DNA of 64,000 bases from contig OZ218952.1 of assembly GCA_965112735.1 (NCBI GenBank), forward strand, positions 4,650,001-4,714,000, read 5' to 3'. The stretch is from Phaeosaccion multiseriatum (Eukaryota; Protista; Ochrophyta, other classes). Shown here in pieces: positions 27,107-32,810 of the stretch (its first letter is position 1; every line of letters begins with the position of its first letter). The translations under genes were made by a program, and so were the position numbers. Below the pieces are notes generated by a model. It saw only the letters and a list, made by a program, of their open reading frames with translations. It did not search any database and was not told the DNA's origin.

Positions 27107-28594
27107 TCAGTTGGGCGGCATGCGCAGGGCCCCGTCAAGCCGCACCACCTCTCCGTTGAGCATGTGGTTGTCCACGATGGCCTGCACCAGAGAGCCGAAC
27201 TCACAGGGCCGGCCCAGGCGGGAGGGGAAGGGTACGCTGCTGCCGAGCTGCTCCTGGACCTTTGTTGGCAAACCGGCTAGGAGGGGTGTTTCGAACAGGC
27301 CTGGGGCAATTGCGCACACTCTGAGTGAGTGAGTGAGGGAGGGAGGGAGGGACGCGGAGGCCACAGGGTGGAGAGTAAGGGCCGTGGTCTCTGATGTGGA
27401 GGGCTTCAAGAGGGGTGCGCTGAGGCCCGACGGGAAGGCGCTCCTCTCCCCTGCGAGACACCGTCCATACGCTTGAACGAGGGGTCCGGGGGGTGTATCG
27501 CCTTGACTTACTTACCGGATGCCGAGAGGCGCCAAGTCACGGGCACAGGGGAGTGTCATGCCCACGATAGCTCCCTGCGACAAGAGAGAGAGAGGGGGGG
27601 GGGGGGGGAGGGGAGAGAGAGAGACGGACAGGGGGAGCGAGGCAGAGAGGGGGAGAGAGAGGATGTGTGTATGTGTGTGTGTTTGTCTGTTTACCCTCAC
27701 AGCATGAGGTGTATATATATACATGCCGTAGTTCCTCACACTACTCTGTTTGCACGAGACTGGCTGTGCAGGTGGGAAGGAAGGGGGGCGACTAACCCTA
27801 CCAAGCTACAGCAGCTTACCTTTGAAGCGGCGTAGGCAGCCTGCCCTACCTGCCCCTCGTAGGCGGCGATGCTCGCCGTGTTAATGATGATCCCTCTCTG
27901 CCCCTCCGCGTCTTGGGGCCGTTGCGCCATGCGCTGGGCAGCGAGGCGGAGAACATTGAAGGTGCCCACGGAGTTGGTGTGGAGCACTCGAGAGAAAGCG
28001 TCAAGATCGTGCGCTGCTCCTTTTCTGGGGGGGAGGAGGAGGAGGAGGAGGAGGGATGGATGGATGGAAGAGGAGAAGAGGGAGAGGTGTTTTTGTCCGA
28101 ACGTTCCTTCGCTAATTTCCAACCCAATACCCCGCCCATGATGAGGGAGAAGGGAGGGGATTCTGGTCTATCTAGTACCCGTTGACTGTCTTGCAAGCAT
28201 GGCCGATTCCCGCGCAGTTGACGGCCACACGAACGCCGTCGTTGAACGTCCTTTCTGCCATTTCCAGCGCTGAGGCCACATCCATCTCGCTGGTGACCTA
28301 CTCAGATGCAGAGAATGGAGAGAGAGGGGGACAGAGAGCGAAAGATAAAGAGGACGAGAGACAAGATGAGCTGGCTTGGTTCCCTTTCTCTTCTTCAAGT
28401 TGACTCACATCGGCTTGGGCGTATAGAATCGGCGCTCCGTCCGGAAAGTCACCAAAGCGCTTCATCGCCTCTTTCTCCGGAAGTATATCCACCACAACTA
28501 CTCCGTACCCTTTGCGGGAGAGCTGTATCGCTGCAGCCCTCCCCAACCCTGATGCCCCTCCCGTGACTATCGCGGACAGCAATTTGGAGGCCAT
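27107..28594 (-). CDS. HSD17B10: 3-hydroxyacyl-CoA dehydrogenase type 2 (SDR; HSD17B10/MRPP2-like); 5 exons
   Basis: [51 protein letters not shown] (YxxxK), [41 protein letters not shown]. Confidence 0.95.
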
Positions 28595-28832
28595 CACGTC
28601 CCAATTTCCCTCGTCCTCTATGCAAAACTAACACGATCACGCGTAGAAGCCAGGCTTATTTCTACGATTGGAAGGAAAAGGCTCTCTGCTGGGCGGGTTG
28701 ACAAAAGGGGTTGTTCCGACAGCTTATCTTTATCGTTTGTTAGTTGGTTCTCTCCATTCAACTGGCGACGCTCCGTTACGTCCTCTTTTTTTTCCCTCCT
28801 TTTTCTCTTGCTCCTTGCACTGACTGCTTCCA

Positions 28833-30130
28833 ATGGGGGCTGGTCCAGCGTTTCATACTAGCGGGGGGGCTAAGCTCAGCGCTCTGAGCAGCGATGAGGT
28901 GGCTGATCTCCTTCGCGGACTGGGCACCCTGTACGAGGAAGCGGCTGAGCTTTGCAGAGGAATGGGAGTGGATGGGAGCCTCTTGGCAGAGACGGGTCAG
29001 TCTTCAAATAAAACTCCCGTCTCCCTCTCTTGCATCTCGCCCAAAAGACTTCAACATAAAACTCACTTCTCCTTTCCTTTCTTTTCCCTTCTTAACTGGG
29101 CCGACACCCAGTCGGAGACGAGTCGGCTTTGGACTCACTGCTCGACGATCTCAACGTGACAAAGGCGACCATGAGGAAGAATCTAAGGTCGAAACTTATC
29201 GGCATGGTCACTGCAGCGCAAGATGGTGAAGGCCAAATGGGGCCCAAAAGAGAGTTCAAGCTGTTCCTCAGTCACACCAAGGTAAGAAAGGAAGGAAGTT
29301 GAGGGCATCTTCGACCGCACTCACATTTTGGATCCACTTCTTCTTAACCCCAAGGTGGACGGCGAGGCACAAACGCTCCAAATTATGGAGGACTTGCAGA
29401 AGCTTGGAGTGGAGGAGAAGCAAATATTCTTTGACCGCAACCACCTTGATGATCTCACTCTGCTGGTGAGCTGACGTGAGGATGTGACCGGTGTTGCAAG
29501 GGCCTCTCATCTCGGCTTGCGTGGCTCCTTCCACCAACTCTCCACCCACTGCTATTCCTCGCTCCCTCAGCCGACTTCTGCTGCTCATCCACCCCGCCCC
29601 TCGCTCGCCCATCTCGATGCCCAACGTACTCTTGCTGTCATGTTTCTGCACTGAACTCTCAATGACACGACAACGCATCACAGGGAGACGAATACGGTAA
29701 GACATTTGTGTTTATGAGTGTGAGTGTGAGTGTGAGTGTGAGTGAGTGAGTGCTCTGTCTACCCCTCTGTCACCTCAGCCCATCCCCTAGACTACCTCCC
29801 CTCCACCCTTTGGAGACTGCTCATCAGTGATAGCTGACAACCTCCTCTCCCCCTCGCTCCTCTCGGCCGCCTATGCAGTGAAGGATAGTGACAACCTTGT
29901 GGTGTGCCTGACCAACGGCATACTCGGCCGGCCCTGGTGCCTGTACGAGTTTATGGCGGCGGCTCGGCACGGTATCACTCTCATCCCCGTTGCCATTCAA
30001 GACCCGACTCCTTTCGAGGCGCCGGCAGACGTGGAAAAGTGAGCAAGCCATGCAGCAACCAACGGATCATACTTGCACTGTGCACTCTTCCCTATCCCCC
30101 CATCTCTCTCTCTCTTTCTCTCTTTCTGTC

Positions 30131-30184
<54 letters not shown>

Positions 30185-31666
30185 TCTCTATCTTTCTCTT
30201 TTTCTCTCCCTCTCTCTCGCTCGGTCGATGCTCTCTGTTGTCATGTTTCTGTGGCTCACTTGATGTGTGTATTTATATGTCGTACCTATCTGCATTTCCA
30301 TCCATCTATCTTTCTATTTCCCCTCTCCTCTCTGCCCATCCATCTCACAGGTACTGTAGAGAGCAGGCCCTGACCCTGCACAAGGATCACGTGGCCTTCT
30401 TCCATCAGCGAGGCATACTCATGAAGGAGCTTGGATATGTGAGTGGAGAATGGGGATGGACAAAAACAAGCAGGCCCCTGTTGAGCCTTTGTTAGGCCAT
30501 TGTTGGGTATGGGTATGGGTGTATAGCGTCTCAGGAGGCTCTCTGAATCTCGCGTTAAGAGTCACTCTCTGGGGCAGTGACGTAATGATAGTTTCTGCTG
30601 CGGTTGACAATCTCACGGGGAGACTTTTGACACTGGAGAGGAATCTCTGAGCACCGCTACTGCTAGTACGATAGCACCCCTTCTGACGGAAGTCTCTCTT
30701 CTCGCCATGCCCATCAATCGCTAACGCACCTAAACAGGTGCTGCTGCGGCTGCTGCGAGACTTGATTCGCACTCCGTATGACTCCACCGCAGATGAAGAG
30801 CTTCGAAAGCAGAACTTACAGTTCGTTCTTCGGAAGATGAACAAAGGGACAGGTGTGTGTGGAAGGAGAGAGGGAGCTGAAGCACATTAGGGCGGGACGG
30901 CATGTCAGACCAATGACATCACAAAAGGGTTCGAGGCTGGCTTCATGCTTCCCGCCGAAGTCGCTTTTCGCTCCTTGCTGCGCCACCCTTTTTAGTGCCG
31001 TCCGCTCATCTGTATTTGCTCTCCGCCACCCCCGGGCAGCCATGGACACCGACCCCAGCAGCTTTCCCGTCCCCGTGACGGAGAGAGAAGCGGTCATGGC
31101 GGCTGAATGGAGGTGAGTACGGAGGTGTTCCTTGTGCTTCCTTGGTGTGCTTTGCATCCCCTTCTCCCCTTCCTCCTTGTGGCTGCAATCTCTCATCCTT
31201 TGCTTTCCTTTCCTTTCCCCGTGGGATCTCCTTCACACCGGACCTCCCCTCCCCTCCCTTCCCTTCCCTGCCCTCCCCTCCCCTCCTCTCCCCTCCCATC
31301 TCCTCCCATCACCTCGGTTCCGCTCCTCTCTCCCGCCTCTCCTTCTTACTTAGGGTGGCACAGGGCCAGATGAACGTGGAGCAAGACCAACTCAACTTCC
31401 TCAAGGACCCCAATCGCACTTGTGGTCGCATGCTCATCGCCAACAAATGGCGTACGTCGTTGGAGGAGCTGGTCATGTCTGAAGAAGACAAGAGGAACAC
31501 CCTCATTGTCGAGGTATGTTAGTACGGTAGGGTGGCAAGGCGGTGGAGTGCTCCCTTTTTGCTCTCCCTCTTTCACCGATAGCCCCTCCCCGTCGCCAAA
31601 CCATCCACTGCCATCCCCCATCCCCCGTCCCCCATGCCCCCTGCCCCATGCGATGCGCGCCCCTCC

Positions 31667-31699
<33 letters not shown>

Positions 31700-32552
31700 T
31701 CTCATTCTCTCTGTGCCCGCACTCCTCCCATTTGCTGCGGCTGCTGCTGGACCAAACTGCTGCAGCTGTCCAAGGTCGAGCACACAGCGATTGGCCTGGC
31801 AGAGGCACAGGGCATGTCCAACGAATCGCTGTCCCATCTGGCAGGTGCGAACTCACTCATCAGCATCACTTGATCTCCTGTCTTATCTGGGGGTGGGGTA
31901 CCCGACCTCCTCATCCAGTCACCTAATCCATATGTCAATGAGTACGCCCCAGGAGTACGCTCTCACTCGATGGTACAGTGTAAATGTGGCCACCCCCCTC
32001 AATCACTCACTCACTACAATGAATTGGTTTCCGGCCCCTCGTTTCGTTTCATGTATGCCTCGCGAGTCACTACCCTGGCCCTTTATAACAAACCTATCCT
32101 CCTTCTCGAACCTTTTCATCATCCCCTCGGAACGCCACAACGACAACGCCATGCAATGCATCCAATGCAGCTGCCAGGCTGTACCTGCTCCTACACTCCC
32201 TCATCTCGAAGGAAGACGCAGCACGTAAGTGTGCTAAGTATACACCCGCAGCAACCACGTGCTCACTAAGGCGTCGCCCAATTTGATTTTCAAGTTTATT
32301 GTGCCCAGTGGGGGCAGTTCCTACCCATCTAATCTACTGTAAAGTGTTCGCCCAATACTGCAACCTTCGATTGAACTTTCTTAATCTTTTGCTTTCCTCG
32401 CTTGACTCTCTCGTCTTGTGACATCAGGCATGAAGGAGGAAGACTACCGACAAGCGATGATCCGCTTCCTCCTCTCCCCCAAGATGGAGCTTGACTCGGA
32501 GGAAAATCTTCAGCGCAGACCACTGGCCGAGCTCCTCGACATCTCTCCATAG
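28833..32552 (+). CDS. Myristoylated SAM-TIR domain protein with two C-terminal helical repeats (~440 aa, 12 exons including a 13-nt microexon)
   Basis: Phase-consistent exons at approx. 28833-28995, 29112-29281, 29355-29465, 29684-29696, 29879-30038, 30351-30438, 30738-30852, 31040-31112, 31354-31513, 31767-31844, 32171-32225, 32429-32552. SAM-like segment LSSDEVADLLRGLG..YEE..GVDGSLL..LDDLNV...RKNL. TIR segment FKLFLSHTK...IFFDRNHLDDL...VKDSDNLVVCLTNGILGRPWCLYEFMAAARHGITLIPV. Confidence 0.82.
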
Positions 32553-32810
32553 CGACCGACCCGAATGGCAAAAGAGTACTTGAAGAAAAGACTTCACGCG
32601 ACGTCGTTTCCCTCAAGTAAGTAAAGTACCCCGCCACTTGCCCGTAGTTCCTTGCTGTAAGACATGTTTGTGTGTGCGTGCGTGCGCGTGCATGCGTGTG
32701 TATGTGTGTGTGTGCGTGCGTACGCACACGTGTTCTCACCTCTCTCCTGCCAAGGCTTTTCAGGACAGAGTGCAAGGAAGAAAGCCATCCTTAGCTTCCC
32801 TGCCTTCCCC

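Follow-up and report, generated by a model that had tools for sequence, protein, structure and literature searches.

The window analysed here, a stretch of 64,000 nucleotides from the Phaeosaccion multiseriatum assembly GCA_965112735.1 (contig OZ218952.1, positions 4,650,001 to 4,714,000), carries on its + strand a TIR-domain gene that is hidden by its introns. When 12 exons between positions 28833 and 32552 of the window are spliced, the product is a single open frame of 436 amino acids with its stop codon at 32550–32552. The protein contains a complete TIR domain (residues 100–272, exons 2–7, 29246–30848) as judged by a profile match and the fold of a homologue, and it retains a putative catalytic glutamate, Glu176 (codon GAG, 29947–29949). 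The gene structure, the TIR membership and the conservation of this glutamate were computed here in silico, and from them we infer cleavage of nicotinamide adenine dinucleotide (NAD+). The reading that we favour, with moderate confidence, is that of an intact nuclear gene for a TIR protein that would cleave NAD+ when it self-associates.

We rebuilt the gene model by script from the window, and found that all 11 introns begin with GT and end with AG and that the exon phases are consistent throughout. Between 28500 and 33000 on the + strand, the listing of open reading frames (ORFs) holds only short ORFs, each with a piece of the spliced peptide and none covering the gene. Read-through hits a stop in every intron, within 20 codons in ten of them and after 54 codons in intron 1, and omission of the 13-nucleotide microexon, exon 4, leads to a stop at codon 149. 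At the 5′ end, an in-frame TGA three codons upstream of the ATG fixes the start codon, while the sole other upstream ATG, at 28620, opens an upstream ORF (uORF) of three codons. With a codon-usage table trained on four long ORFs within the window, every one of the 12 exons scores highest, among its + frames, in the frame of the model, and the intron frames are nearly all negative; a dicodon model, which is noisier, concurs in 10 of the 12 exons. The genomic sequence is identical in contigs from four DNA runs of one sample, and these contigs break only at intronic microsatellites. Homology, codon usage and sequence quality are thus three independent lines by which the multi-exon gene is most likely real, beyond chance. 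A sequence-only reading of the same DNA had proposed just such a phase-consistent 12-exon gene that no single ORF reveals; the rebuilt model, the stops in the introns and the codon usage bear this out, and the peptide strings quoted in that reading are present in the spliced product. The individual junctions are predicted from splice signals, homology and codon bias, those of exons 8–12 from splice signals and codon bias.

Two side observations concern the same region. The microsatellites, GTGA, CT and GT/GC-rich runs at which the short-read contigs of all four DNA runs break, occupy parts of introns 4, 5, 8 and 9 and of the 3′ flank (29703–29760, 30093–30231, 31233–31312, ~31650–31710 and 32640–32720). 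In addition, four runs containing the locus were considered as RNA support for the junctions and rejected as such: their DNA contigs are collinear with the introns, and two apparent joints proved to be artefacts of 21-letter repeats.

The TIR domain is recognised most clearly once the exons are joined. Against a family profile of 35 marine-protist TIR proteins, in which no window row was included, spliced residues 100–272 score 105.9 bits (hmmsearch) over profile positions 3–183 of 186, with indels of only 1–2 residues at the junctions. Exon 5 alone (29879–30038), which encodes the end of alphaB, betaC, alphaC and betaD with the RPWCLYEF motif, matches Pfam TIR_2 at E 1.7e-4 (22.5 bits, profile positions 50–98); this is under the 28-bit gathering score because the exon holds only those positions of the profile. 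Used as a query, exon 5 retrieved 113 proteins from a representative library of 1.84 billion proteins. The spliced protein aligns with at least 100 relatives at residues ~100–272, across six exons, and the exon pieces are collinear in the alignment (A2). TIR_2 itself is found at E < 0.001 in 64 of 101 related proteins scanned (best 4.3e-21). By its sequence, the window TIR falls, as a divergent representative, into a large and uncharacterised marine-protist TIR clade that is known solely from metatranscriptomes, MMETSP and Logan assemblies.

Each of the exons concerned takes its expected place in this alignment. Exon 2 (29112–29281; AG and GT sites, entry phase 1, exit phase 0) completes the N-terminal region and continues through a linker into TIR betaA (FKLFLSHTK); the family alignment begins inside it, at residue 100, and its in-frame dicodon score is +23.4 bits. 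Exon 3 (29355–29465) encodes alphaA–betaB (IFFDRNHLDDL) and is collinear with family columns 15–67, within the 105.9-bit match. The predicted microexon (29684–29696) supplies GDEY plus one nucleotide between AG and GTAAGA flanks, and when it is included, one inserted residue is the sole difference from the family at that place. Exon 6 (30351–30438), which covers the alphaD region, lies in the continuous family alignment and has its best codon score of the three + frames in frame. Exon 7 (30738–30852) encodes betaE–alphaE, spans family columns 166–206 and brings the domain to its end near residue 272, with IRTPYDSTA where the family has IALPFSPHK. Because the TIR runs from residue 100 to 272, the stretch after ITLIPV that had earlier been taken for a linker is in fact the second half of the domain, alphaD–betaE–alphaE.

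The fold was predicted with AlphaFold for P0023, the closest single-domain homologue, together with alignment A2, and the window protein was aligned to P0023 end to end. The model (predicted local distance difference test 94.6, predicted template modelling (TM) score 0.91) has the order betaA-alphaA-betaB-alphaB-betaC-alphaC-betaD-alphaD(x3)-betaE-alphaE of a five-strand TIR, so that, as modelled on P0023, the domain is predicted to have the five-strand flavodoxin-like fold. A Foldseek search with this model gave 77 PDB matches at E ≤ 0.001, and all of the top matches listed are TIRs, including those of L6, RPS4, SARM1, Roq1 and RUN1 (E ~1e-6, TM ~0.6). The 105.9-bit profile match, the TIR_2 match of exon 5 and the fold of the homologue all confirm that the TIR domain first recognised from the letters is genuine.

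The glutamate equivalent to Glu176 is required for cleavage of NAD+ by the TIRs of SARM1, plants and the bacterial Thoeris system, and these are active only when their TIR domains self-associate. In our family of 101 relatives, the column of Glu176 is at least 90% Glu, and the surrounding R-P-W-C..E..A is conserved to at least 90%. The best PDB sequence match of the family profile is the human SARM1 TIR (E 3.5e-6), where the family Glu lies opposite the Glu of WVHKEIVTA. The alignment offset (8–100 = 564–656) makes the latter E642, which is replaced in the PDB entry 7cm7 ('E642A'). The family Asp likewise falls on the Asp of SARM1 FID and the family Trp on W638, with all three residues also present in the window protein (FFD138, W172, E176). 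Two further claims of the sequence-only reading therefore held up: the Glu codon of its WCxxE motif at 29947–29949 is an intact GAG, at the SARM1 E642 position, and the TIR is of the type that carries the NADase Glu, its nearest solved relatives by sequence and by fold being NAD-cleaving enzymes. We regard NAD+-cleaving activity as a prediction that is likely but not assured.

Under the favoured reading, the host would be a photosynthetic stramenopile-type alga, and the protein would be soluble, with its 436 residues divided into a helical N-terminus of ~99 residues (possibly SAM-like, and possibly N-myristoylated), a TIR domain of 173 residues and a lineage-specific tail of 164 residues. Self-association through the N-terminal or the C-terminal part would pair the TIR domains and thereby give an active site; the paired TIRs would then cleave NAD+, resulting either in NAD+ depletion or in a signal of the cyclic ADP-ribose (cADPR) type, and the outcome would be felt in a stress, immune or cell-death pathway. 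Several observations weigh against this scheme. None of the RNA runs contains the locus, so the junctions are unsupported at the RNA level, and an exact 24-mer over junction 5|6 was not found in metagenome contigs. The window TIR is divergent from its family, with SHTK for SHYK and FFDRNHL for FLDSEDL in addition to the IRTPYDSTA substitution, and the fold prediction was made for the homologue P0023 instead of the window protein. No profile match supports the N-terminus as an oligomeriser, and the C-terminal tail is without relatives. Lastly, only 4 of the 29 Glu-bearing protist TIRs tested were active in E. coli (bioRxiv 10.64898/2026.04.20.719644), and the glutamate alone is therefore no proof of activity.

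The tail comprises residues 273–436 and is encoded by exons 8 (31040–31112), 9 (31354–31513), 10 (31766–31844), 11 (32171–32224) and 12 (32428–32552, with the stop codon), which together are the least secure part of the model. It matches no Pfam family and has no relatives in the collections searched, and a search of metagenome contigs with exon 9 came up blank. An alternative to the favoured reading would be that exons 1–7 are right and the 3′ part is mis-joined. The real protein would then stop shortly beyond the TIR or continue through a different set of exons, and free choice of exons would have produced some or all of the tail as an artefact. Besides the missing homologues and the lack of the locus in RNA runs, this would fit the dicodon scores of about zero for exons 8 and 11, the stop that lies 12 codons into intron 7, and the fact that some relatives, P0023, P0046 and P0101 among them, end within ~10 residues of the TIR. 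Nevertheless, each of the five exons is flanked by canonical sites and scores best, among the + frames, in the frame of the model, and exons 9, 10 and 12 score +10.1, +17.0 and +12.9 bits in frame as compared to -20 to -40 out of frame. Moreover, introns 8 and 9 are strongly negative, and a sensible gap separates the stop at 32552 from the next gene. On balance we consider a mis-joined tail unlikely.

The tail had also been described as containing repeats, and this did not survive a self-alignment test: the best self-alignment scored 30 against a shuffle mean of 25.6, a value reached by 38 of 200 shuffles, and is thus not significant. The suggestions that the tail is a C-terminal sensor and that the gene is a defence module are speculation, given a tail without relatives and ordinary neighbouring genes.

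Another explanation for the conserved glutamate would be if the TIR served, without catalysis, as a scaffold or adaptor and brought in partners via TIR-TIR contacts, the Glu being kept for structural or ancestral reasons. The low proportion of active enzymes among the protist TIRs assayed in E. coli is what one would expect in this case, and the window protein does depart from several family motifs. On the other hand, conservation of RPWC..E..A at 90% or above in the 101 relatives points to selection on an active site, and the solved structures nearest to the family in both sequence and fold are enzymes, whereas the adaptor TIRAP, the best PDB match of any single exon, has Gln at the position of Glu176. 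A purely scaffolding role is, in our view, distinctly improbable.

The N-terminal region is harder to classify than the TIR. Exon 1 (28833–28995; GT donor, best + frame by codon usage) encodes residues 1–54, with the initiating ATG, Gly2 and a helical region, and a candidate SAM-like region spans residues 17–85 (28881–29203), where it is split by intron 1. The candidate stems from a language-model search (Atlas), in which exon 1 is nearest to three SAM_1/SAM_2 clusters (0.82) and the first 36 residues of exon 2 are nearest to a SAM_NCD1 cluster (0.76); both are leads under the 0.9 line. The N-terminal pieces of exons 1 and 2, searched singly although the domain is split by intron 1, gave no Pfam match at E ≤ 10 and no PDB match, and a word-indexed protein search with exon 1 gave no match. 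AlphaFold2 on exon 1 alone returned one long helix (20–43), which is uninformative for a single-sequence fragment. In 17 relatives, a conserved module of ~75 residues (A3) stands directly before the TIR. Pfam assigns it to SAM_EPH in ten of these proteins and to SAM_2 in four (best E ~3e-4), and against PDB profiles it shows weak matches to the SAM domains of SAMSN-1, tankyrase and ANKS4B; a layout of SAM-like module followed by TIR therefore recurs in the clade, outside animals. The N-terminus of the window protein did not match A3 with either hmmsearch or hhalign. The SAM domain named in the sequence-only reading is thus backed by sub-threshold language-model leads and by neither Pfam, PDB nor A3, and we judge a SAM-like fold of residues ~17–85 to be about as likely as not, or slightly more so. 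As for the myristoyl anchor proposed with it, Gly2 is present and MGAGPAF fits the very permissive pattern G-{EDRKHPFYW}-x(2)-[STAGCN]-{P} (PROSITE PS00008 type), so that Gly2 is possibly N-myristoylated. The spliced protein has no transmembrane segment (highest Kyte-Doolittle 19-residue mean 1.16).

The comparison with SARM1 depends in part on this region. Animal SARM1/TIR-1 is an NAD+ hydrolase of ARM-SAM-SAM-TIR order whose ARM domain is auto-inhibitory. Of the solved sequences it is the one that the family profile matches best; it shares the family's Glu, Asp and Trp and has a similar fold (TM ~0.6), and the window protein also has a helical, possibly SAM-like unit directly before its TIR. 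In contrast to SARM1, however, the window protein is without ARM, only 99 residues precede its TIR, and no ARM/HEAT match was found in the exon pieces. It has at most one SAM-sized unit where SARM1 has two, and its TIR is central and followed by the orphan tail of 164 residues. The family moreover has an enlarged alphaD region like that of plant TIRs, as seen in the P0023 model, and identity to SARM1 is ~20%. The window protein is therefore not a SARM1 orthologue, and is SARM1-like in outline at most. The earlier description of it as SARM1-like holds for a TIR with the equivalent of E642, and fails for the rest of the architecture, in which ARM is absent, SAM-like units number one at most and the TIR is not terminal.

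An ARM-less SAM-TIR cut from SARM1 is constitutively active. One could imagine a different layout, with the window protein as a naturally ARM-less SAM-TIR that is restrained by its orphan tail and a myristoyl anchor, and belongs to a protist-wide, SARM1-like TIR clade whose other members have SAM-like-TIR units wired to cyclic-nucleotide-binding ion channels. We rate this layout as rather improbable. If it were true, marine algae would possess an NAD-derived signalling or suicide pathway that predates the animal SARM1 system and is independent of it.

The remaining alternative to an intact, NAD+-cleaving TIR protein, a silent or decaying copy (an unexpressed pseudogene) with a frame open by chance, would agree with the lack of the locus in RNA runs, of the junction 24-mer in metagenome contigs and of a close fit to the family consensus, but is very unlikely indeed, since 11 introns keep canonical sites and phases, neither a frameshift nor a stop is present, and both the codon bias and the near-invariant TIR residues are intact, which is unexpected after long neutral decay.

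Plant TIRs, both of NLR and of TIR-only proteins, are the other obvious reference. Those of L6, RPS4, RUN1 and RPP1 are the top Foldseek matches of the P0023 model (E 1.4e-6 to 2e-5, TM 0.58–0.64), and they share with the family a domain of ~170 amino acids, several alphaD helices and a catalytic Glu in alphaC; they differ in that identity is only 11–18% and in that the window protein is without NB-ARC and LRR. Among eukaryotic microbes, Glu-bearing TIRs have been reported in Gephyrocapsa huxleyi, Guillardia, Phytophthora and Chlamydomonas. Compared by description, these share the conserved Glu with the window protein and differ from it in their flanking parts. The Gephyrocapsa huxleyi TIRs are structurally similar to the RPS4 and SARM1 TIRs, and their genes change expression in virus infection and resistance (PMC12489294). 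Production of cADPR has been demonstrated for Glu-bearing TIRs from a cryptophyte, an oomycete, an amoebozoan and a choanoflagellate, and that of 3'cADPR for a Chlamydomonas (green-algal) TIR (bioRxiv 10.64898/2026.04.20.719644). Glu-bearing TIRs have thus already been published in microalgae and protists, and the window gene adds a member and opens no new category.

Within the marine-protist clade (P0023, P0008 and P0095, for example), the core FLSH.K...F.D...L...NLV..LT.G.L.RPWCL.E..A..G....PV is common to the relatives and the window TIR. The window protein nevertheless stands apart: its best identity to the clade is ~50–58% over exon 5, it is without the IALPFSPHK and RC motifs, its N-terminus is unlike module A3 and its tail is unique. 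Indeed, the exon 5 search of the representative library gave nothing above ~58% identity and nothing with the same N- or C-terminus, a search of viral contigs with exon 5 gave no match, and tblastn found no paralogues within the 64-kb window.

The clade itself holds more elaborate architectures. At least 12 members are fusions in which an ion-transport domain, a cyclic-nucleotide-binding domain and a SAM-like module precede a C-terminal TIR (e.g. P0095, P0066, P0068, P0036, P0062, P0078 and P0027), and a full-text literature search found no paper describing such channel-TIR fusions. P0039 combines an ANF-receptor ligand-binding domain with a TIR, and many relatives, including P0002, P0004, P0005, P0006, P0007, P0012, P0014 and P0020, have two tandem TIR domains of the clade type. 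The family, which in marine protist transcripts includes SAM-like-TIR units fused to cyclic-nucleotide-binding channels, may outrank the window gene in interest.

If expressed and active, the window protein would add a further NAD-cleaving TIR, from an ochrophyte-type alga, in whose group the study of TIRs has only just begun: virus-responsive Gephyrocapsa TIR genes were reported in 2025 (PMC12489294), and the first enzyme activities of protist TIRs in 2026 (bioRxiv 10.64898/2026.04.20.719644). Its small and simple layout, with a short N-terminal unit, a TIR, a tail and no transmembrane segment, would make it an easy test case for how TIRs of eukaryotic microbes are switched on.

Lastly, we looked at the surroundings of the TIR gene, and the genes next to it are ordinary. 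Upstream lies a divergent, intron-containing gene for a short-chain dehydrogenase (27736–28597, - strand), two exon ORFs of which match adh_short at E 6e-8 and 8e-12. Its start is ~238 base pairs from the ATG of the TIR gene, and with only the lone short uORF in between, there is little room for more 5′ exons. The dehydrogenase and TIR genes probably have a bidirectional promoter region in common.

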